From Podarcis vaucheri (taxonomy: Eukaryota), in assembly GCA_965113315.1 (NCBI GenBank), contig OZ220369.1: DNA of 64,000 nucleotides, one strand, 5' to 3'. Made by a program: the position numbers and the translations under genes. The notes beneath the pieces are model-generated. The model was given only the letters and a program-made list of their open reading frames with translations, made no database searches and had not been told where the DNA came from. This document shows, in pieces, positions 9,419-63,318 of this stretch; within the stretch, counting starts at the first letter, position 1, and each line of letters starts with the position of its first letter.

Positions 9419-12400
9419 TCAGAAAGCATAGCGGGTGCGGATGTCCTCTAGCTTCTTGGACACCTCTGGTGGGGTCCTGTCCAGCTCTTCAGACACGTTC
9501 TTCTGCTTGTTGGGCTCCATGGAGTTGAACTGCTCACACAGATCCCCATCAATGACATTCTAGCAAGAGAAAGAAAGAGCGGGGGGCTATTTTAGAAGCT
9601 GCAGCCCATGGAACAAAGGAGGGAATGGGCTCAAGCACAGAAAGCAGACCCAAAGCACACAGAACAAGAGGCCTTGTCTAAGAGGCCCAAAGGTTCTCCA
9701 CAAAAGTCACAATGAATAAAAGCAAATTCTCTCTTTAAAAAAGTACAGGTGTTCAGCAGACATTTGCCTAAAAGTGAAAAATGAAGGTGTCCACAAGTTC
9801 ATGGAATGGGGGGGGGGCGGGACAAAAAACTAGCAAACTCCAGCAAAAAACCTTGAACTGTCTTGCTCAAGATCACCCCAGGGCTTGGCATGTGGTGAAC
9901 TTGCAGGTTTAGAGCTACACTGATAATGTTGCAGTCTAGAAATGAAGACTTAACAGTGCTAATGCAAAAATAACCTGCTACATGACTCCTCATTGTCAGA
10001 GAAGCATTTCCGGAAATGCAGATTCATATGGGGGGCCAGAAACCAAATTCTGACACCATGGACAGTGCTGCCCTACCCATGATGTACAGGTGACCCAAGA
10101 GAAACACATGGTTTCCCAAGAAAAAAGAAAACCCACCTTGATACCTAGGTTAGTTCTAACGGGATGCTACCATCACCAGGGAGAACTGCAATAGGGAATC
10201 GCGGGGAGGGGGCTTGAAATCTATACTTATCACTTAGAAAAGATAAATATCTATTCAGACAAACCACCAAGATGGTGAAAAAGAAAAAGTCAGAGAATCA
10301 TGTAGACATATAGGCCCCACTGCTGATTACCCTTCTTAGCAAGCAGAATCCTGTCCTGGAAAGCCATTCCAGCAACCTCAGCAGATGCTCTGACCAAAGC
10401 ATAAAATGCAGGGGGAAATTTGGCCTTCACATTGGCAACTTTTACCCATGAACAGAGCTCAAGTGCTTACTAGCATATGATGGACACGTAGCAGAGACCC
10501 ACAAACTCAGCCTACCTTCACTGGGAAGTAATAGGAGCGGAAGCTGAGGTGGTCTCGTCCACAGAGAGGAGGGTGTTCAGACCTCAGATGCATCTCAACG
10601 TGCTGGAAGAAGTCATGATCCTGAAAAGAGCAGAGAGCACCATCAAAGGTAAAGGAAAACAGCTGGAAGCAGCAGTGTCACGCCACACCCGGGGCGAGCA
10701 TTGAAAAGAGGAGTGGCTGTGATTGGTACACTGGTTGACAACACGCCACCTGAACAAACCTCTTAGAGCAGGGGTAGGCAACCTAAGGCCCAGGGGCAGG
10801 ATGCGGACCAATCGTCTTCTCAATCTGGCCCACAGACAGTCCGGGAATTAGCGTGTTTTTATATGAGTAGAATGTGTGCTTTTATTTAAAATGCATCTCT
10901 GGGTTATTTGTGGGGCATAGGAATTGGTTCAGGTTTTTTTTCTTCAAAATATCGTCCAGCCCACCACATGGTCGGAGGGACAGTGGACCGGCCCAGGGCT
11001 GGAAAAGGTTGCTAACCCCTGTCCTAGAGAGAGTGAGCCCTCTGCAGGCTGGCATTCATCATTTTGGGGAAGGATGTATTTACATAGCAGGAAGTTCATC
11101 ACAAAGCACTGGTCCAATGTGGATTTCCCTCTTTGGAAACCTGCCTGGACTTCAGATATCACCTTATTTGTATCTGCCCATTCTTCCAGTCTCCCAAGAA
11201 GGAGCCTGACATATAGTTTAGAGGGTACAGGTAACAAACTAATGGGTCTATAACTGGCAGGATTTTTCTAATCACCCTTTTTGTATATTGGGGCAATTAT
11301 ACTCAGCTTCCACCCTTCCGGTATGCGACCTGAGCTGTTAATATATGAAAACTGTTTTGCAAAAATGGGTGACCAGAAATCCGGTCTTATCTTATAAATC
11401 TCCATTGGGATCATGTCTTCTCCTGGAGCTTTACTGGCTAGTTGGCTTACAATTAGCCTTTTAATCTGATTGGGCGTGATGTCTGGCCAGTCTGGCAGTT
11501 ATAATAACTGAGTATAGTAAACTTGTGAGGGTGGGTCAGAGTGGGGGCCATATATTCTTGTAAAATATGCCACCCAATCCTTTCCTTGGACAGATGCTTC
11601 TAACGAGTAGCCCAGCCCATTTGTACCGTGGGCAACCAAATGCCCAAATTTCCATGAGTCCTTTTTAGCTCTGCTTCATTCTGTCATGCAATAAAATTTT
11701 GGTCATGCCTCATGGCCAGAGCCAACTGGCAAATGTGGGTGTCACCTGTGTCAGCAACGGTTTTCAGGGTACATTATATTGCCAGGTATCAGTGTATGCA
11801 TTGGGGAGGGGGGAGACATACAGAGAGCAAAGAGAGCCATAGGCAGCTCAGGAGGTCCAACAGCAGCCAAGCTCAGTACGTGCATTAAAGCAGATCCATT
11901 TCTGATCCACACAAGGAAGAGCCAAGAGGCCAACTGTGGGCAGGGAGTGGCATAGCCTCCCCACCCTTTCAGCTTTCTCTTCCATCCTCCCATAACTCAC
12001 TGTCGCTACTGCAGGGCATTAAGTGCTCCTGCTGCACTATGTAGATGAACAACTCTTAATATTTCCATCATACGAGAACTTCCTACCTCATGTGATGTAA
12101 ACGGGACCAGAATGCCAATGCCCCCAGATAAGGTCGTGTAGACAAGAGATTCAGAGCCTCCGGGGATTAGAGTCGTCTTCTGCAGGGACAGGACTGTTTC
12201 CCCTACATGGTAGTTCATAATCACCTCTGCCTGAAAGTAAGACAAGCAAGACTTCAGCAGGTGACCTAAGATAATGCACTAAATCCAGACAATCTCATTT
12301 TCATTAAAGAAAACCTACATTTATCACTTCCAGTGGTTGGCGAGGACATTTCAAAACACACTTATAATGCAAACTTGCAACAGTGATTTCCTATGTGTAA

Positions 12401-15400
12401 TGCTTGGGGAGGGAGGTACTATTAGGCTACTGGAGTACATTGGACCCCTTCCATTATGAGCACAGTATTTCATTAGGACAGTATTTCACATTTCTAAAAT
12501 GAAGTGTCAATTAAATTATCCCCCCCCCTAAAACAGGAGGATTGTTGAAATATGTCTTAAAATTTACTTCCTGCTAGCTAAGTGTAAAAAATAAAATTGT
12601 GTAGGAGGGTTACCTCTCCTACAGTAACAGGGGTGCTATGAAACTCGGAAGGCATTTCAAGTATTTGCAAAAAAAAAATTAAGCAAACCTGAATCACTTC
12701 ATACTCCCTACACAGTGGTACCTTGGGCTACATACACTTCAGGTTACATACGCTTCAGGTTACAGACTCCGCTAACCCAGAAATATTACCTCGGGTTAAG
12801 AACTTTGCTTCAGGATGAGAACAGAAATCGTGGTCCGGCGGCGTAGCAGCAGCGAGAGGCCCCATTAGCTAAAGTGGTGCTTCAGGTTAAGAACAGACCT
12901 CCAGAACTAATTAAGTTCTTAACCCGAGGTACCACTGTACTGCTCAACAATTACATGGGGTCAGTTGTCCTGGGTTGTTTCTCCCCCATACTGTTTCAAG
13001 TTTCATTTAACTAACAGGGGTCCCAATGTTCCCCTATTGCAGTGTTTCCCAACCGCTGTTCCGCGGCACACTAGTGTGCCGTGGAACTTTGCCTTGTGTT
13101 CCGCGGAGGCGGGCGAGTCGGGCGGTGAGAGGCGGGGCGGCGGCGGCGAGCACACGCGGGGCGGCGAGCGAGCGAGCTCCCACATCCCATCGCCGCTCGC
13201 CACCTGGCCTGCGCATCCGCTCGTTACTGGGCCTGCCCCAGGAGGTGGGGTTGCGGGCATCACGCCCTTCCCCACGTGAGCGGGGAATCCCATCCGCCCC
13301 CACGTGAGCGGGGAATCCCATCTAATCCCATCTCAGCCCCCGCGAGAGCAGGGGAATCCCATCTGGCCATCTCAGCCCCCGCGAGAGCAGGGGGAATCCC
13401 ATCCGGCCACGCCTCCTGGCCAGCCAATCGGCTGGCTGGAGGGGGCGTGGCTTGTCCTTTTTAGGGCCGGAGCGGAGGGGGCTCGCCCTCTCTTCTCCGG
13501 CTAGCCCCATCGCTGCTCGCTACTGGGCCTGCGCATGCTCGACGGCACCAAGCAGGGGCCCTTGGCCGTGCCGGTGCCCACCGTGCCAGCCTCCGCCCAG
13601 GAGGGCGGCAAGCAGCCACCGCCACCACCACCCCCGCCGCTGCCCGGCAACCGCGCCGCCGCCCCCGGCTCCCCGCAGCGGGTGATCGTGCAGGCTTCGA
13701 CGGGCGAGCTGCTCCGCTGCCTGGGGGACTTCGTGTGCCGCCGCTGCTACCACTTCCCATTGCCGCTCAGCCTGCGCGTGCGCGATCGCGCCTTCGGGAT
13801 TCCCTTCAGCAGGCATCAAGCAGCCTGCCTCCCTGCTTTTTCCAATTAAGGGAACCTCCACTCTCCTGCCCCTCCGTGTTTCTCACCCCAAAGCCTTGTG
13901 GGCAGCAGGAAGTGGGGCCGCCCCGCCTCTACCCCACGCCGGGTGGCTGCTGACACGTCCCTTGGGCAGGAGAGGCATCCGGCTGGATGAAGGCAGCGAC
14001 GCCAGGGGAACGAAACAGCACGGCAGGTCTGAGTTGGTGCCTGGAAGGACACAGACTGCACTGCATTCCACAGCTCCGAGGCTGGCAGGTGAGTGCGTGC
14101 ACTCCTCTCTCTCATTTTATTTAATGTGCATTTTAGAAGCATGTGGAAATATCCTGCGTCATCAACCACTTTGGGGAAAGTGTGCGTGTGTGTGTTTGGG
14201 GCTAGATTTCATGCATGCCTTTTTTTAAAAAAGTTCTCTTCCTGCTTCATCCACATTCACCCCCCAAAAGGCCATTTTCTGTGTGCTGAATAAATTCTGC
14301 AACTCAAATGGCACGAGGTGCCAATGCATCGGGGCTGTGGAATTTATTCTGCTTGCAGAATTCTGCAACTCAACCGCATTTTGATGTTTAAATGTTGTAT
14401 TTTAATCTTGTTTTTAAGTTATATTTCAATCAACTTGTTTTATTATTGGTTTTTTTTTATTTCAATCAACTTGTTTTTTATTATTGTTTTTATTTCAATC
14501 GACTTATTTTTTATTATTTACTATATTTCTAATGGTGGTGTGCCGCGAGATTTTTTTCATGAAACAAGTGTGCCTTCGCCCAAAAAAGGTTGGGAAACAC
14601 TGCCCTATTGGAAAGGGAAACTGTCCCTCCTATCCCCAGGAACTTCTCAAAACAGAGTAGCGGGGAAATCACAAAGGTTTTGCCTGTATCATGTTACAGC
14701 ATTTCATGAACACAGAAGAGATTTTTCTGTGAACTTTAAAAAAATCCCCATTCCTTTGTGCATGAAAAACAACTATAAGCAACCCTAATTACAAAGCTCC
14801 AAAGGCATCTGCTTGACCACAGGAGTACAATTTCACTCTATGCAGGTGTTTAACTCTGCTCCACACTGCATTTATGTAGATACAGAAGCCCTTTCAGGCT
14901 CCAACCGGCGGACAGTCTTGTTATTAATTCCATACGGATACTGGCTTCTAAAACCAATTCACCATGACATGTTTTTTATCAGTAGACTTATGCATAGATT
15001 TATATATTTTTAAAAAGGAAGTTGCTGGTTCCAGAAAAAGGCAGGTAATGAAGTTAATAAATAACCAAAGAACAAGAAAGAGCCTCCAGTTTCTCATCTG
15101 AGGAAGCACCCCCTTCCCTACACCAAAGTTACCTTTTGAGAAGCCCCATTAAGAAGGCCTCTATCCCATAACGCCTTGTTTCCAGTTGGGTCCTCGTCTA
15201 CCTCATCATTTGTGTTGGGTGGTAGCCGCACCTACAGGAGGAGGCATCAAGAGTGTCAAACTCACGTGTGGTCTTAATGGCAAACGGGAATAACTGGAAG
15301 GTGTTGTAAGCATGAATTCAGAAAAGCCCAAACCAGCAAACACTCTGCATGTCACTTCAAACCACAATGAGTGCCCCAACCTGGGTTCACAGCATTTTTC

Positions 15401-18400
15401 TCCCCCAACAAACCATGAGAGTTAGCCAAGGTTTGTTCTTAACTCATTGCCTGTGCTTGCTGGAAGCAAACAAACCAACAGGCTGATGTCTGAAAGTCAC
15501 AACAAGCCGTTGCAGCCGCAGCAGAAGAGGAGCAGACCAAGAACTCTTCAGGAGCATGCACCAACACAACCACATAAATCCGCAAGCTGTTTATAGCTGT
15601 GGGGTGACTATGGTGTGTAATCCAAGCCACAAAAGGAGAGCAACCAAGCATGTGTCTCCATTAACAGAAACGTCACAAGGTGTGCACTTTGGCAGAAGAG
15701 TGTCCAGAGGAAGTTGCCACCCCCCATGACAGCAGCATGTGAGTGTGGGAGAAAGGTCTCACAGGCCACTGGCTAAATGGTGCTTAGCAAAAGCAAAAGG
15801 CTGGGGTTTCACTGGCATCTCCCACATCAGGGAATCAAAACGACAGCAGGACAGTTCTCAAATGAGCCCCAGGAGTTTCCTGGCTGCCTTCAGGCTGACT
15901 CACCACACAGATGTTGCCAAACTTGTCAGCCCCAGCCACAGTGTCATAGTCGAGGAGGCAGGCAGTGGTGACCCAGCGGGGGTGGGTGTCATCTGCAAAA
16001 ATGACCAGCTGGTTCTCGTTCCTCTTGTAGCGCACCCAGATGAAGCTCTCCTGGACATCCGAGACGATCACTCGGTGCCCAATGGTCTGGATCCCACAGA
16101 TGTAGTTGGCAATGTGCTGGGAAGTGACAGCAATTCAGAAAAGCAGTTCAAAAAGCAGAAAAGGGAGGCTGTTCAAGGCAAGCCCCAAAATCCCTTCCTG
16201 AGCCACTACGCAAATGAATTCTGAACATCACTGGCATCTCTCTGCAAGGCTATGATCATTTATAGTGCAACAGCTGTAGCTTTCTAAGAGAGAAAAGGAG
16301 AGTTGGGACATTGCTTATCTGTGATCACTTTCTGTATCTGAATGTGCACTGAGAACCAGTGCTAACATCATTCTAGGTAGTTCTCCTGATTCTAGAAATA
16401 CTCAGAAGGCCAAACAAACAAGGGAAAAGCAAATCTGTGAAATATGAAAATGTTCCTATTTCTACTTTCTATAACCCAGAACCCGCCAGAACTACAAATC
16501 CCATCATCCTTGACCATTGGCCACGCTGACAATAGCTGATGAGAGTTGTAGTCCAAAACATTTGGAGGGTCCAGGCTGCTCTGTGCCCTTTTGTGCAGAC
16601 GGTTCACTACACCATTATAAAGTTGGTGTCAGGAACGACTAAAAAAAAATCCAAAACTTTCAACTATCACCTTGTGTGAATCACAGGCCATGGCTTCATA
16701 AACACAAGACCACACCTTTGAGCCTCAGAGTCTCAATTCTATTCCCAAGGGAAAGAAAGGTACAGAGAGGGTAGAAACAGCCCTGAAGACTTGCCCCTTA
16801 AGCAATCTAAAGGAAGCCAAAGCTCTGGGCAAGAGAATGTTTCCCTGGAACTTGAAAAAAGTTCAAAGGTTTCAACCAAATTTGTTAAAAGTGATAGGGT
16901 ATATCTGCATTAGGAAATGCAGCTTCCAGGAGATCTACACACACAAACACACACACAACATTCTAAATACCTTATTCTCACACTTCCGGAGCAGCTTCTT
17001 CTTGCCCAAGTCATATACCCGCAAGAGTTTCCCCACACCAATGAGCACTCTGCCTTGGAAGGGGGCAATAGCAGCTGGTACCTCCTCTACTGGGGTCTGA
17101 ACAGAAAGGAAATGAAAGAGAAGAAGCCTTTGTCAAGCAGACTAAACAAAGATCATTAATATTACCCTCACTGCATAAATGACGTCCCGCCACTGCAGGG
17201 ATAGGCAAGTTTCAGCCCTGGCAAAGGATGCAGATCCACCACCACTGACTTTGGGGGCCCACTTGAATCAAGTACCCATTGCATCCACTGGGGAAGAGAT
17301 GGACTTTGCAAGCCCACAAGGACAAACTGCCTCTAGGAAGGGGCCTCCTAGTCCGGTTCCTGCCCAACAAAAGAACCTGCCTCCACACAGGTCCAGGCTG
17401 CTAGGTATCAACAAGGAGGAAGAATTCAACTTTTGCAGTGCTCTGTACATTGTTGGCTTTCTCCATGTCAACTGAAGCCAAAGTATTCAGCAACCACCAT
17501 CAGGTGCTGCAAAAGCTCAAGTCAGATCACCTATAAATGACCCATTCACAGGTCTATGCTTGTTTTGCTTCAAATGTCCATTAGATAACTGCAACTGTCA
17601 CACCATTACTATAATTGCTCAAATTTCCCTGGCAGCAAGCAATGTGCATACATTTTGCATGGCAAACACAGGCAAAATCCAATGTGATTTTTGATATGGC
17701 TGCTGTTTTGTGCACAGAAGGAAAACCATTTGTGGAGTACTTACTAACAGTGATGGTCCTCTGTTCTCAACCAAGAGATTTCCGTCCCAAAAAGTCGGGT
17801 CTCATCAGTACATTTTAGCAACCTCTTGGCAAGCCCCATCCATGTTCATCTTCCCAGATTCCTTCCCCTCCAACCCACTAGTGGAGGAAATTCTCACCTT
17901 GTGCAGGAACTCAAGCTTCTCCCCACTGTTTATCAACTTATAGGTGTAGACAAAGCCTCCAGCCACAGAGCGTGGGTTCAGGATGAGGTCCTTGGCTACG
18001 CCCACTAGAACATGCCAGTCGTCACCACCATTGGCAAATCGGCACACTGCCACACTGTAGAGAGCCAGAACGATAATGTTACTTGACAAGACGAAGGGAA
18101 GACTGGGAAGGCAAAAGAAGTAGTTGCTTCACAGCAATGAAGAGCAAGAGAGAACACTTTGGGGAAAGGCAGCAGCGAAGGGTATGTTGTACCATTTGCT
18201 TGTGGTAAGGCAGTATAGAAATGCAATACGCAAACTGAATGAGATTTAATTAGGGCTGTTGTCAACTGAGAAGATCATGGTAAATGACTGCTATCGGCCC
18301 CAAGACCCCAAACAACTTCAGGTAGACTGCATTTTTGCTTTATTTAATTAGATTCTAGAGTCATCTGGCAACAATAGTATAAGTAAATATTTGGTTTGAC

Positions 18401-37400: not shown

Positions 37401-40400
37401 TGTGGAAAACAATACATGTACCAACAATAAATTAGTGTCATACTCTGCCTCGTAAGAGAACATACTTTTAGATGCATTTTTTACGTAAGCTGTCCTGGAA
37501 ATTTCAACTGAAGAATACTATATAAATGTTCATAATAAAATGAAAAAATTAAGAGTAATAAAGCAGACTGAAAAGGTTTGCCTGCACTGTAAGTGAAGGT
37601 CCCAAAAGAAAAACTGCCATGAATAAAAAATTTAAATATCCAATAGTTCAGAAACTGATTATTCAGTCTGCCACCTGCCTGTTTATCTGGTGCAGCAACT
37701 GACCCTATTGCCACAAAATCAATGGAACGCAATATATAAGAATTACTTATAAAAATTAAAATTATGTTTTGTTTTTTGTAAACCACCCTGTGACCATTTT
37801 GCTGAAGGGAGGTACAGAGACCTCTAATATAAACTTATAATCAAACTAACCAATAAAAATACCTCAAAGCACTTCAAGAGACATCCATACAACTCCTGTC
37901 TTACAGTGCCTGTCCCACATGTATCCAGAGCTGACATAACTTAAATAACAAACACACATTCTCCACCTGCCTCCCCAATTCCTCTACTGTTTCCCTGTGT
38001 CTGTTTTAGAATGGAAATCTCTTCGGTTACAGGAATATATCATACCGGTGCATAAATGACACTATATGCACAACAAATAGTAATACTGTTGTTGTTATTA
38101 ATATGCCACTAAGAACAAGGGATGCGGGTGGCGCTGTGGGTTAAGCCACAGAGCCTAGGACTTGCCGATCAGAAGGTTGCGGTCCCTGCTCCTGCCAACC
38201 TAGCAGTTCAAAAGCACATCAAAGTGCAAGTAGATAAATAGGTACTGCTCCGGCGGGAAGGTAAACGGTGTTTCCGTGCGCTGCTCTGGTTCGCCAGAAG
38301 TGGCTTAGTCATGCTGGCCACATGACCCGGAAGTTGTACGCCGGCTCCCTCGGCCAATAAAGCGAAATGAGCACTGCAACCCCAGAGTCGGACATGACTG
38401 GACCTAATGGTCAGGGGTCCCTTTACCTTAAGAACAAACTACTAGTACAAATTCAGGTGAGGTGCCCTCTGATCTTAGGCTGTGTTCTCTCTAAGCCCAA
38501 AGTCAAGGACTTGGGCACCTTTGGAGAGCACTTGCTCTCCGCAATTGCTTGCTTGCCCACCAAGGCCTGTTTCCCTCCTTGCCCTTCTGATTTGTTTATG
38601 TACTCAGTCATGTGACTTGCCTAACTCTGATAGTGGGGACCTAACCCATGGTTGCACTGGAGGCCTCCTCCACGCCATCCAGAGAAATCTTGTATTATGA
38701 ATACAATGAAAGACAGCTTATTTATAAGAAGGGCATACTAAGCATATTGGAGAACTTGAAGATGGACAGTTGACTTTGTTGACAAAGGAGTCAACAAGGT
38801 GTTAGTTGCATTTTTTTTAAGAGACACACAAACAGTTGAGCAGGGAAGAGTCACCAGAGAGACGAATTCCTCAATACCTCATAATCCATTTCCAGACAGG
38901 CAAACATGGGATTTTCAAACCCCACATCTACTCCAACTACATGGTAAACCAAGGTGTTGGCTTTATGCGCTTCTAATGGGGAAGAAATTGTGAGTCGGGC
39001 TGCGGCATCCCTGTTCAGAATGTACACTAGCTTCTGCTTCTCAATGGCACCTATGAAGCGATAGACAGAGAGAACATTAGGAATACAGAAGCAGAAGATG
39101 TCTGCACTTTAATGCTTAAGGTGCCCAATCCCTACCCTTGCATAAGCAGCCCTTGCAGCCCTCTCAAGGCACAGCAGTTTTCCCCTGCTACTTTCCTGTT
39201 GGAAGAACCAGTAGTTGAATTCAGATGTAACACTAAACCAGTTTAACATTAGAAGTTGAACAACAGCAGGACTTGGGTTTCGCACACCCATCCTTTTCTG
39301 GACTACAAGAGCCATAACTGCCATTGTCATAGTGCAGCCCCATATAAAGGAAAGGTGGCATTAAGGTAGCTGCATACACTCTTAGAACCATGGCAGTGGA
39401 GGCTCACCTGAAGACACCTTTTTTCTCATCACAGGATGGTAAACAATTAGAAAACCATGTTCAACATTCAATGTTTTTACAGATCCACTTCAGCTACTAA
39501 GATTTGTATCAAACCCCAAAATTACATTTCAGCTTTAAAAAAAATGGCATGATGCATGCAAAAGAAAATGGGCATTTATGATGAGAACCTGATCAGAATT
39601 GGATCCAAATGTCTCCATGTCTTATGTCAGAGAAGAGACATGAATTCCTAATCATCACTTCAGGGAAGAGAAAACTGTTGCACCAGATATATAGGGCTCA
39701 AGTGCTTTTCTTCAAACTGACACCCACAAGGCTCCACTTACACCCCATTAAGCAAACTTAGCTAGTTCAGTTTTCTAATTCAGTTTCTAGTTCAGTTTTC
39801 TGCAGTCATACACATAACCACATCAAGTACCAAATGGGTAGCAGGAAAGTATTTTGAATTATACTACATTCCAACAAATTCTTCGTAACATGGAATCACC
39901 CTGATTGGCTGAGTAAATCTAGATGGAGTGGCTAAGAGTATAAACTGGGAATCCCTGGTCTAAATATCAATTCAACCACAAACTCACTTAGATAGCCTAA
40001 GGAAACTCACAACTTCTCAGTTCCCAATTGCAACACAGATCTAGTTGCACTGGGATCGCCAATAAAAGCACTTTTGATTGAAGCAGTTTCAAAACCTAAA
40101 CCAAGGATAGAAAAACCAACCAATGTTTCTTATCCAAATCATTTCTCCCATTCAGTTATTCAACGTTATTATACAGCTACCACTGAAAACAACCATCCCA
40201 ACTTACTAATCATGACAGCTCGCCCCTTAGGATCCACAGCCAAATACTGTCCAGGAACAATTCTGCGACAGCCACTCTTGCCAAAGGTTTCCTGGTGAAT
40301 CTTCTCAAATACATTTTTTGAGGGCTGATATTCCAAGATAACAATGCGACCTGAATCACTGCCCACCACAATGTAGTCTTTGGTTCCACCAGTTAATCTG

Positions 40401-60627: not shown

Positions 60628-63318
60628 CTATGGTTCCCAATCCTCCTCCAGAAGCTGTATTTGGAACCCAGCTGTGTCCACCTCCACAGTGTGGATGCTG
60701 AAATTCCCCAGGCCCTGAAAGGAAAGCATGCAGGGTGAGTGAAATATTCACTACAAAATATTTAAGTCAGAATATTTTGTTCTGAAGCCTGATGGAACTT
60801 CAACACTACAAGGGGGTCGACTGTCACTCCTGACCTGACATCAGGGCTACATGCCCTGGAAGGTCACAGGCCAGTGCAGAGGCCACTCTTCTCTTTGGCC
60901 AGGGGGCTACATTCTAGCTCTGCACATGTCTCCATCTGGCCCAAGCAAAGAGGCATCATCACAACTGAAGAGCCCAGCCAAAGCGCTCAAAGATTATGCC
61001 AAGCAGTGTTGGTGAGAAGTGCAGCCTGGGCAAGGGGTGTGGCCTAACCCTGGCCAGAATCTCAAGGGCCTGTTAGAGAGGCCTGGAGGGCCAAACTCAG
61101 CTCCCAAGTGTGAGGCTCCCCCTTCCTGCAACTACATGGTACCCGCCCATCACTGAATTTCCCCTCTCCGAATTTGCTTGGGAGAGGGTGTGCATTAACC
61201 TGCTCCTGAACCCCAAACCTGCAAAATGTGCCCTGCTGAAATTTCTGCAGGGAGACACTGATTAACAGGGACTTGGGAGCTGGCTCCACTCACCTCTGTT
61301 TCCGTCAAGATCCTTTGCAAGGCCTCTTGGTTCCTGGGCTCTTTAGTTAAGACATAGAGAAAGCCACCTCCTCCAGCGCCAGCCATGCTCTGCCCATAGA
61401 CATGAGGCTGGAGCACCTCCATCATGCGCCGGACAGCCAAAGGCTCACACCCAGGGGCCATATTCTTCTTCTGCAGCCAGTAATGATTCATACACTTGCC
61501 CAGGAGAGCCAGGTTGCCTGGGGTGAGGAGGAGGAGTTGCAGGACACTCTGGCATTGAACGATTTGCCCTTCTTAAAGCAAAGTTGCTAGGTCTCCTTTC
61601 CCTGTCAGATACAGCCATGACAGTGCTCTTGGCTCTAATCACATGGTGTGCATGTCAGCCTTCTTCCTTCTGGGAAAATCTGACACCTGGGCTGGGCTGC
61701 CCACCACAGAAGTGGGAAGATAGTAGCTCTGGCTGCTCTTCCCTGCTGCTTCTCTGTTGCTTTCAATCTAGCAAGAGGAGCGCTACAAGATCCAGCTAGA
61801 TAGAATTGCTTTCCCCAAACCAGTGAGTGCTGGCTGGGGCTGATGGGGCTTGCCCTCCAGATGTTTTGGACTGCAGCAATTTGGGGAAGGCTAAAGCCCA
61901 TGATGACATCTTAAAAGATGCCCCGCTCCCACTCCCATTGGCTGTTGCCTGGAGTAATTGCTCTGAAGCACACAAACACAACTACCCTGGTAGCTCCTGC
62001 AAAATGAGAGCCTGTTCAACATAGGAGGTGGTTTCTGTGCAAGGTGTTTTGTTTGGAGGTTCTAGCAGGGGAGCGCAGCTATCGTATACCCTTGACCGAA
62101 GAACGGTACACTCCTTCTATCTGGGATNNNNNNNNNNNNNNNNNNNNNNNNNNNNNNNNNNNNNNNNNNNNNNNNNNNNNNNNNNNNNNNNNNNNNNNNN
62201 NNNNNNNNNNNNNNNNNNNNNNNNNNNNNNNNNNNNNNNNNNNNNNNNNNNNNNNNNNNNNNNNNNNNNNNNNNNNNNNNNNNNNNNNNNNNNNNTTTGA
62301 GCAGAGGCACTGTAGCCTCTGCCCTGGGTAACGAACTGTACAAGATGCCCAAGGAACAAACTGCAGTACCTTGCCGAAGGGCCTGGGCACACTCCTCTGC
62401 GTTGTTCACCAGTGCGCTGGCATTCTGCACAATGGTGGGTAGCCGGGCATACCAGTTCCTTAGAACATCCTGAAAGAAAAGGAAGCAATTAAAGGTTGTC
62501 TGCGTTTCTGGTGCTCAAGAGTGCTTAGAGGAAGAAAGGCTTAGCAAATTCCAACTCCACAACCACCCTCCTGCACCTTGGGGAAAGTGCCAGTGTAAGA
62601 ATACTCTTTTTAACATTGTGTTTTAAATGAGAGCCATCCTGGTGTCATTGGTTAGAACGCTGGACTAGAACCTGGGAGACCAGGGTTCAAATCCCCACAT
62701 GACCATGAGATTCATGGAGTGACCTTGGGGGCCAGTCAGTGCCTCTCAGTCTAACCGATGTCACAGGGTTGTTAATGGAGATTAAATTGAGGAGGGAGAG
62801 AACCATGTTGGCCACCTCGAGCTCCTTGGAGGAAAAGGTGGGATATAATTGAAATAAATAATGAAATAAATTGCGTTTTACGTGACCCTAGGACCTTAGG
62901 TTGAAGGGAGGGTAATAAAACAATAAGAAAAGTATTAATAAGAATACATGCAACTCTACCAGGTGAGTCATCCTACCTGTGTAGACCAAAACACAAGGAT
63001 GAAGTGCATCATGCCAACAGCACAGGGAGAAAGGTACACCCGTTGTAGGACAGGTACAACTCTCTGCTCTAAGCTACGTCAGAGCTGTGGACCTCAGGCC
63101 ACAACTGGCACCTCCAAGCACCTTCTGTACCTGGAGCAGGTTGCGGGCCAGGCGGGTCTTGCCCGTGTACAGCAGGAGCAGGTGCTCATTCAGGGTGTAT
63201 ATGAAGCCCTCCGGGACGGTGATCTGCTCCACTTCTACTTTTAGTGGCAGCTGAGGCTTTGAACGCCCAATCTTGAGGCCTGGCACCAGCCCACCCACTT
63301 GATCCTGCCACCCTCCAC
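60628..63318 (-). CDS. FCSK: L-fucose kinase, last four coding exons: 63318-63131, 62469-62370, 61517-61294, 60714-60628 (stop TAG); rest of the gene lies beyond the window
   Basis: [19 protein letters not shown]...[15 protein letters not shown] | [11 protein letters not shown]... | ...[11 protein letters not shown]...[20 protein letters not shown] (GHMP kinase motif) | [13 protein letters not shown]...*; GT-AG boundaries and phases compatible; synteny with COG4. Confidence 0.95.
62049..62127 (-). pseudogene. 7SK snRNA-derived fragment (probable 3'-truncated retrocopy) in an FCSK intron; 5' part presumably hidden in the adjacent N run
   Basis: Reverse complement atcccagatagaaggagtgtaccgttcttcggtcaagggtatacgatagctgcgctcccctgctagaacctccaaacaa matches the central part of vertebrate 7SK (about nt 155-232). 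Confidence 0.88.
62128..62295. other. Run of 168 N (assembly gap or masked sequence)
   Basis: Directly visible. Confidence 1.
62632..62860 (+). mobile_element. Old tRNA-derived CORE/MIR-like SINE
   Basis: tggtgtcattggttagaacgctggactagaacctgggagaccagggttcaaatcccc head, gtgaccttggg core, cacagggttgtt, A-rich tail. Confidence 0.65.

Follow-up and report, generated by a model that had tools for sequence, protein, structure and literature searches.

That cut-and-paste transposons capture gene fragments is well established for plants. For animals, the parts of Tan et al. (2021, PMC8277862) on which we draw describe 370 Pack-TIRs, elements in which terminal inverted repeats (TIRs) enclose captured sequence, from 100 genomes, 208 of them on hAT elements. 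According to the same passages, multicopy Pack-TIRs make up four of these 370 (three in Xenopus tropicalis and one in alligator) and favour GC-rich cargo, and many animal Pack-TIRs are transcribed as chimeras. Here we describe an element of this kind from the lacertid lizard Podarcis vaucheri, found in an intron of SF3B3 on contig OZ220369.1 (assembly GCA_965113315.1), of which a stretch of 64,000 nucleotides (nt), hereafter the window, was analysed. Our best explanation of the data, which as a whole we hold to be very likely, is that the element is a non-autonomous hAT transposon with TIRs of the SPIN / hAT-N3_AC-like type, and that it is a Pack-TIR (a 'Pack-hAT') whose cargo is a piece of the neuronal gene CDK5R2, which encodes the CDK5 activator p39.

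Among the closest described systems is Pack-hAT-N8_XT of Xenopus tropicalis which, in the passages of PMC8277862 that we cite, is likewise a non-autonomous hAT element with intact TIRs, an 8-bp target site duplication (TSD) and a few hundred bp of GC-rich gene cargo, present in several copies with the same cargo. The two differ in that the cargo here is internal coding sequence (CDK5R2 residues 93-166) rather than 5' untranslated region, and in that the other copies of our element are known from proteins; furthermore, the host here is a lacertid, and those passages name no lizard case. The element also resembles the Pack-MULEs and other Pack-TYPE elements of plants, TIR elements without a transposase that shuffle and amplify host gene fragments with a preference for GC-rich ones, yet Pack-MULEs belong to the Mutator superfamily, whose TSD measures 9 bp and whose TIRs are long, and they number thousands per genome. 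The element is new as a lacertid example of a kind already known; transposons that spread a gene fragment are rare among vertebrates, though not without precedent.

Boundaries and family assignment

The element is 1,563 bp long (13040-14602), its ends being bounded by TIRs and a TSD. Scanning the whole window for a perfect TIR of at least 10 bp next to a perfect 8-bp TSD, with a spacing of 100-5000 bp, we found this element as the sole such configuration, and none arose in 30 first-order Markov simulations of the window. Past the 15 perfect TIR bases, similarity between the two ends continues, imperfectly, for some 25 bases more, and the ends contain repeated GTGTGCC(G)CG and TTCCGCGG motifs; from the usual look of such regions, these subterminal repeats are probably transposase-binding repeats. 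A Pfam search of 14 open frames of the element detected no transposase domain, the only match being CDK5_activator. Because an 8-bp TSD is combined with a CAG-starting 15-bp TIR and no transposase, we assign the element to the non-autonomous hATs; described hAT families have the same TSD length and short (about 10-25 bp) TIRs that start with CAG. As in other Pack-TIRs, the intact TIR pair encloses part of a host gene, and the parent copy of that gene is located elsewhere.

The core of the element is CpG-island-like. Taking an island to be at least 200 bp with GC above 0.5 and a ratio of observed to expected CpG (CpG o/e) above 0.6, the core at 13090-14100 qualifies, with a CpG o/e of 0.75 against 0.28 and 0.20 in the flanking intron and 0.24 in the whole window. 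All of these features (perfect 15-bp TIRs, the TSD CCCTATTG, the length of 1,563 bp, the lack of a transposase, and a GC- and CpG-rich island in a CpG-poor intron) had been claimed in an earlier note made from the letters of the window, and the present results bear them out, the ends to the base.

GC-rich islands are hard to assemble, and one might therefore ask whether a GC-rich contig piece was misjoined into the SF3B3 intron. We regard such an artefact as extremely improbable, since an exact TIR pair with an exact 8-bp duplication of intron sequence is the signature of an integration and would not come from a misjoin, and since the same composite interior occurs in independent gene models of Podarcis muralis, described below. 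Just left of the insertion site (12870-12939) the intron holds an inverted repeat of 25 nt, 84% complementary around a 20-nt spacer, and close by a direct repeat of 20 nt; these may belong to another small repeat element.

Within the hAT superfamily, the TIR reads CAGTGGTTCCCAACCT in Anolis hAT-N3_AC and CAGYGGTTCTCAACCT in the SPIN families, and the 8-bp TSDs follow the patterns NYYYRRRN / NYYTARRN (Novick et al. 2011, PMC3014272). The terminus of our element, CAGTGTTTCCCAACCG, is identical to that of hAT-N3_AC at 14 of 16 nt, and the two share the 8-bp TSD and a squamate host (PMC3014272); the comparison is by TIR alone, and hAT-N3_AC differs in being 600 bp long with no reported gene cargo, whereas the element here carries a CDK5R2 piece. 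A second likeness is to the insect family hAT2_NA of Bombyx, Rhodnius, Heliconius and Manduca, a family of miniature inverted-repeat transposable elements with an 8-bp TSD and the TIR C(G/A)GTGTTTCCCAAC (Zhang et al. 2013, PMC3845634), of which the Manduca (M. sexta) form is identical at 14 of 14 nt to the first 14 nt of our element.

We also scanned metagenomes of the Joint Genome Institute with the TIR plus GTTCCGCGG, and recovered three AT-rich, eukaryote-like contigs that each hold a small element with the same 15-nt TIR (L001:1066-1092, L002:1523-1549 and L003:793-819), and whose terminus also matches that of hAT2_NA; the same scan of viral contigs gave no matches. The short open reading frames (ORFs) of the three contigs have no Pfam match, and so provide no direct link to a transposase. 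Unlike our element, the hAT2_NA group and the metagenome contigs have interiors that are unrelated to it, AT-rich and free of the CDK5R2 piece, and only the terminal ~27 nt are shared. That insects and a lizard have such a terminus in common may point to a hAT lineage that is widespread and perhaps horizontally transferred, although no more than those ~27 nt are involved.

The CDK5R2 cargo and its counterparts in Podarcis muralis

The cargo was identified by alignment to CDK5R2 of P. muralis (P0034, XP_028597672), with which it shares 69 of 70 aligned residues, with one 4-residue gap; nowhere else in the window does this protein align. The ORF that contains it (13535-13849) matches the Pfam family CDK5_activator (PF03261) at 34.2 bits (cut-off 25, E 2.7e-8), over profile positions 178-206 of 336 only, and also matches the p25 chains in PDB. 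An exhaustive HMMER search of 1.84 billion representatives yielded 31 matches, and all those checked by name were CDK5 activators, save the best one, to which we return below.

Aligning the cargo to CDK5R2 of five lacertids and other squamates, we find that it reads GNRA, as do three Podarcis species, where Lacerta and Zootoca read SNR, and that the Thr in its DGTKQG motif is shared, among the aligned squamates, with P. muralis alone, the rest having Ala or Gly. Judged from this alignment, the cargo is p39-specific, of Podarcis type and hardly diverged from its parent. The 4-codon gap relative to P. muralis CDK5R2 was considered as a further shared derived marker and was downgraded, given that the length of this stretch varies among lacertids and that Zootoca has the short form.

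The cargo is a fragment of CDK5R2 rather than a copy of the gene: residues 1-92 and 167-316 are absent from the alignment. By its sequence, it is too short to be a CDK5 activator, because it has no N-terminal myristoylation region and almost no cyclin-box fold, and it thus holds neither the complete cyclin-box CDK5-binding domain nor the MGTVLS of a functional activator.

The best match to the cargo in the HMMER search was not CDK5R2 but a P. muralis 'uncharacterized protein LOC144328279' (P0001, XP_077787046), 93% identical over the cargo, whose 90% cluster also includes XP_077788640 (P0032, LOC114591266) and the UniProt entry A0A670J3W2 (P0033). By tblastn, all three proteins match the interior of the element from about 13465 to 14088, switching between three frames of the window copy. 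Both junctions of the capture are common to them: on the left the cargo begins at the same Asp, and on the right it ends in CRRCY, followed by His and then by the repeat unit U3 (Table 1). Each goes on through the interior for another ~100 residues, as far as the splice donor, and ends in ...RGWQ exactly at the equivalent of CAG/GTGAGT (14088/14089), after which a different exon supplies one last residue. Part of the N-terminus of P0001 can be aligned to sequence just upstream of 13465. In P. muralis the genuine CDK5R2 gene and the LOC copies are on separate chromosomes (137.3 Mb and 92.0 Mb, respectively).

Since the same interior and both junctions are found at other annotated loci, the capture would predate the copies, and a multi-copy family is supported, at the level of protein sequence. 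The earlier note had suggested such a family as a possibility, to be checked by copies sharing the CDK5R2 junctions, and in this respect the three P. muralis models agree with it. Further statements of the note also hold or find support: the ~70 codons of CDK5R2 lie at exactly the positions it gave (13541-13750), the reading as a hAT element with a captured fragment is consistent with the 8-bp TSD, with a CAG-starting TIR matching hAT2_NA and hAT-N3_AC, and with the identity of the cargo, and the recent origin that it suggested fits the Podarcis-type GNRA and the P. muralis-specific Thr.

There are two other ways in which these data might have arisen. The first is that an old hAT relic in the intron was broken and then repaired with CDK5R2 sequence, so that the capture took place at a single locus, independently of transposition, and no mobile family exists. 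In the cited passages of Tan et al. (PMC8277862), 98.6% of animal Pack-TIRs are single-copy and arose mostly through gap-filling repair of this kind, and consistent with it, neither a TIR search allowing up to three mismatches nor a self-BLAST found a second copy in the window. However, three P. muralis models have the same cargo and junctions in a different sequence, one of them with a different upstream exon, and the perfect TIRs and TSD speak against an old relic, making this explanation highly improbable in our view.

The second is that segmental or tandem duplication of a region holding one Pack element made the copies, rather than repeated transposition. P0001 and P0032 are 100% identical over the 232 residues that they share, and are encoded on the same 92-Mb chromosome, as would be expected if these two had been duplicated locally and recently. 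On the other hand, the window copy is diverged from the P. muralis copies by an estimated ~3% (judged from 66 of 69 and 93 of 107 residues; Table 1) and has its own clean TSD, while the 27 N-terminal residues of P0032, from an upstream exon, have no match in the window, so that the P0032 locus would have different flanks. We therefore consider duplication an improbable source of the copies, and prefer the reading of a young Pack-hAT spread by transposition.

Several points nevertheless weigh against that reading. Among the TSD preferences of related families (NYYTARRN / NYYYRRRN / nTnnnnAn), the single site here fits N-Y-Y-T-A but has T,T where the pattern NYYTARRN would have R,R. The Thr shared with P. 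muralis appears, from the codons, to result from a change at a CpG site, where a parallel change is possible. The firm extra loci number two, by NCBI gene IDs only, and are the two whose proteins are identical to each other and lie on one chromosome, while P0033 could be an allele of P0001 or P0032 in another assembly. These other copies are known at the level of protein models, and the P. muralis gene models are themselves predictions with putative transcripts. Finally, the evidence comprises the window copy and protein models, and neither a cargo-free backbone nor an autonomous element is among them.

What are the P. muralis proteins, then? They are best read, from their match to the element, as translations through transposon copies and not as CDK5R2 paralogues, likely being annotation artefacts or transcripts derived from transposable elements; the element would thus explain why 'uncharacterized proteins' of P. 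muralis carry a precomputed CDK5_activator Pfam hit. With P0001 as query, a search of the 136-434 residue range found no further relatives of the part outside CDK5R2, and the 104-residue ORF and a 109-residue exon-like frame had no homologous proteins in the 57-190 residue range, so that small ORF calls on short assemblies yielded no extra copies. Literature searches on the LOC numbers, on the accessions and on CDK5R2 together with transposons found nothing relevant.

Interior architecture and proposed origin

The cargo lies exactly between two of three copies of a unit of ~35 bp (CCCATYGCYGCTCRC...GCCTGCGCRT), termed U1, U2 and U3. In the P. muralis copies there are 14 extra codons between U2 and the cargo, and the same stretch, segment A, is found in the window ahead of U1, at 13146-13186; its P. 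muralis counterpart is directly upstream of the CDK5R2 piece. We infer that 43 nt were lost from the window copy between U2 and the cargo, and it is this deletion that would bring the ATG at 13535 into frame with the CDK5R2 piece. Segments A, U1, U2 and U3 appear to have undergone rearrangement.

Upstream of the exon-like stretch, a motif scan revealed two CACGTG E-boxes (13273 and 13301), both inside the 28- and 40-bp tandem repeats, and the promoter-like cluster listed in Table 1. The T-rich element of that cluster, TTTTTAGG (TTTTTAG/G), resembles a degenerate TATA box or a splice acceptor and may be either; at its counterpart P0001 appears, judged from the protein sequence, to read TATAAAACA (YKT). 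Apart from the cargo, the open frames of the GC-rich interior have no Pfam match, and the rest of this interior may be either the backbone of the family or a second captured 5' gene end. The AT-rich tail forms the final 490 bp of the element.

Such an arrangement could be taken for a functional young gene or regulatory unit, in which the CpG-island promoter drives a p39-derived peptide, or an antisense or small RNA affecting CDK5R2 or SF3B3. The CpG o/e has been kept at 0.75-0.82, compared with 0.24 for the genome as represented by the window; the promoter-like motifs are accompanied by a consensus donor; both NCBI and Ensembl/UniProt annotate ORFs through the interior; and chimeric transcription is reported for many animal Pack-TIRs in the passages cited from PMC8277862. 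However, the reading frame is not kept between the copies, which differ by 43 nt upstream of the cargo (as deduced from the protein alignment), by a 2-codon indel and by a frameshift near 14050, and of the 336 positions in the profile of the CDK5 activator domain the cargo covers only 178-206. On balance we think a functional unit unlikely.

We instead favour the following history for the element as a non-autonomous Pack-hAT. Before its most recent transpositions, an ancestor in the Podarcis lineage, probably that of P. muralis, would have picked up a 210-bp piece out of the central part of the CDK5R2 coding sequence, probably when gap repair or replication switched templates. This route fits because the cargo sits between direct repeats of element sequence (U2 and U3), as such repair leaves; gap repair and replication template switching are among the models discussed for animal Pack-TIRs in the passages cited from PMC8277862. 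The 15-bp TIRs, together with the GTGTGCCGCG / TTCCGCGG repeats of the subterminal regions, would be recognised by a transposase encoded elsewhere, a partner whose existence we infer and which in hATs has a BED finger, an RNase-H-like core and a hAT dimerisation domain; excision followed by reinsertion at a staggered 8-bp cut would have produced the duplication of CCCTATTG in the SF3B3 intron. The chimeric element would then have spread to at least two further P. muralis loci. Because its TIRs and TSD are perfect, and its cargo is identical to the parent at 69 of 70 residues with both Podarcis- and muralis-type residues, the element is probably young.

Each copy might bring with it a CpG island, promoter-like motifs and a long stretch resembling an exon with a donor. 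Since gene models of P. muralis treat this stretch as coding exons of genes labelled 'uncharacterized', transcripts that are chimeric or spurious probably arise from the family. A bolder proposal is that transposition is ongoing in a Pack-hAT family confined to the P. muralis lineage, whose copies, each with its own CpG-island promoter, long exon and donor, found chimeric genes (LOC114591266 and LOC144328279) that express a p39-derived peptide, or antisense or small RNAs against CDK5R2. We rate this as a long shot; if true, such a gene-founding family would be a vertebrate counterpart of the young Ssk-FB4 gene family of Drosophila.

With a young multicopy Pack-hAT from a wall lizard, one that combines coding sequence with a CpG island and a splice donor, the described examples would come to include a squamate. 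It would also serve as a tractable system for the formation of chimeric elements by template switching between internal repeats, and could show whether lacertid hATs retain their activity and in what way these elements give rise to spurious or new gene models.

Host gene and neighbouring features

The element lies in a 2,902-nt intron of SF3B3, 530 nt from the intron donor and 809 nt from the acceptor. The exons of SF3B3 were searched for singly by reference, with no joined gene model, and were found on either side of the element (Table 1). This upholds the placement in an SF3B3 intron made by the earlier note, with one correction: SF3B3 is on the minus strand, so that both the cargo and the exon-like part run antisense to it. 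At this locus the exon-like stretch is most likely neutral.

Table 1. Positions of the element, its parts and the neighbouring SF3B3 exons in the window, with the identity of the window copy to P0001
Feature	Position	Strand	Details
SF3B3 exon downstream of the occupied intron	12230-12087	-	human residues 1088-1137
Left TSD, CCCTATTG	13032-13039		exact 8-bp match to 14603-14610
Left TIR, CAGTGTTTCCCAACC	13040-13054	+	perfect 15-bp reverse complement of 14588-14602
Left subterminal region	13055-13110	+	palindrome GTTCCGCGGCACACT / AGTGTGCCGTGGAAC at 13058-13087 (15+15 nt); TTCCGCGG twice (13059, 13099)
GC-/CpG-rich core (CpG-island-like)	13090-14100	+	1,011 bp, GC 0.70, CpG o/e 0.75
Segment A	13146-13186	+	frame 3; 15/17 identical to P0001 residues 47-63
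Repeat unit U1, CCCATCGCCGCTCGCC..GCCTGCGCAT	13186-13222	+	direct-repeat family
Tandem repeats, 28 bp x 2.2 and 40 bp x 3	13253-13403	+	Tandem Repeats Finder; between U1 and U2
Promoter-like cluster	13424-13465	+	CCAAT (13424), GC box GGGGCGTGGC (13442-13451), T-rich TTTTTAGG (13458-13465); motif scan
Exon-like stretch	13465-14088	+	P. muralis models read through, via frames 1, 3, 2, 3 of the window copy; tblastn of P0001, P0032, P0033
Identity to P0001, start of exon-like stretch	13465-13521		17/19
Repeat unit U2	13506-13540	+	directly upstream of cargo
ORF with ATG start, 104 codons, holding the cargo	13535-13849	+	Pfam CDK5_activator; probably fortuitous
Captured CDK5R2 (p39) coding fragment	13541-13750	+	70 codons (210 bp), residues 93-166 of P. 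muralis CDK5R2
Identity to P0001, cargo			66/69, plus a 2-codon proline indel
Repeat unit U3	13757-13790	+	directly downstream of cargo
Identity to P0001, downstream of cargo	13764-14090		93/107; last ten residues differ by frameshift
Splice-donor consensus CAG/GTGAGT	14086-14094	+	exon end at 14088
AT-rich 3' part	14101-14587	+	33-bp tandem repeat x 3.3 (14419-14529), AATAAA at 14289, right subterminal GTGTGCC (14538, 14568)
Right TIR	14588-14602	-	exact reverse complement of left TIR
Right TSD, CCCTATTG	14603-14610		8/8 identical to left TSD
SF3B3 exon upstream of the occupied intron	15231-15133 (99 nt)	-	33 residues; AG acceptor and GT donor read directly
SF3B3 exon part	within ORF 15838-16134	-	human SF3B3 residues 983-1063

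Elsewhere in the window, on the same strand as SF3B3, lies a C/D-box small nucleolar RNA, SNORD111 (39585-39667, minus strand; Rfam RF00611, 46.8 bits against a gathering score of 46). In human and other mammals SNORD111 is hosted by an intron of SF3B3, and its placement in the window fits the same arrangement here. A run of 168 N (62128-62295) falls inside a GC-rich stretch with many overlapping open frames (~62.0-62.5 kb). Downstream of the exon at 12230-12087, in the direction of SF3B3, a reverse-transcriptase fragment at 10947-11498 (minus strand; Pfam RVT_1, 27.2 bits, just below the cut-off of 29.6) is probably a decayed long interspersed nuclear element.

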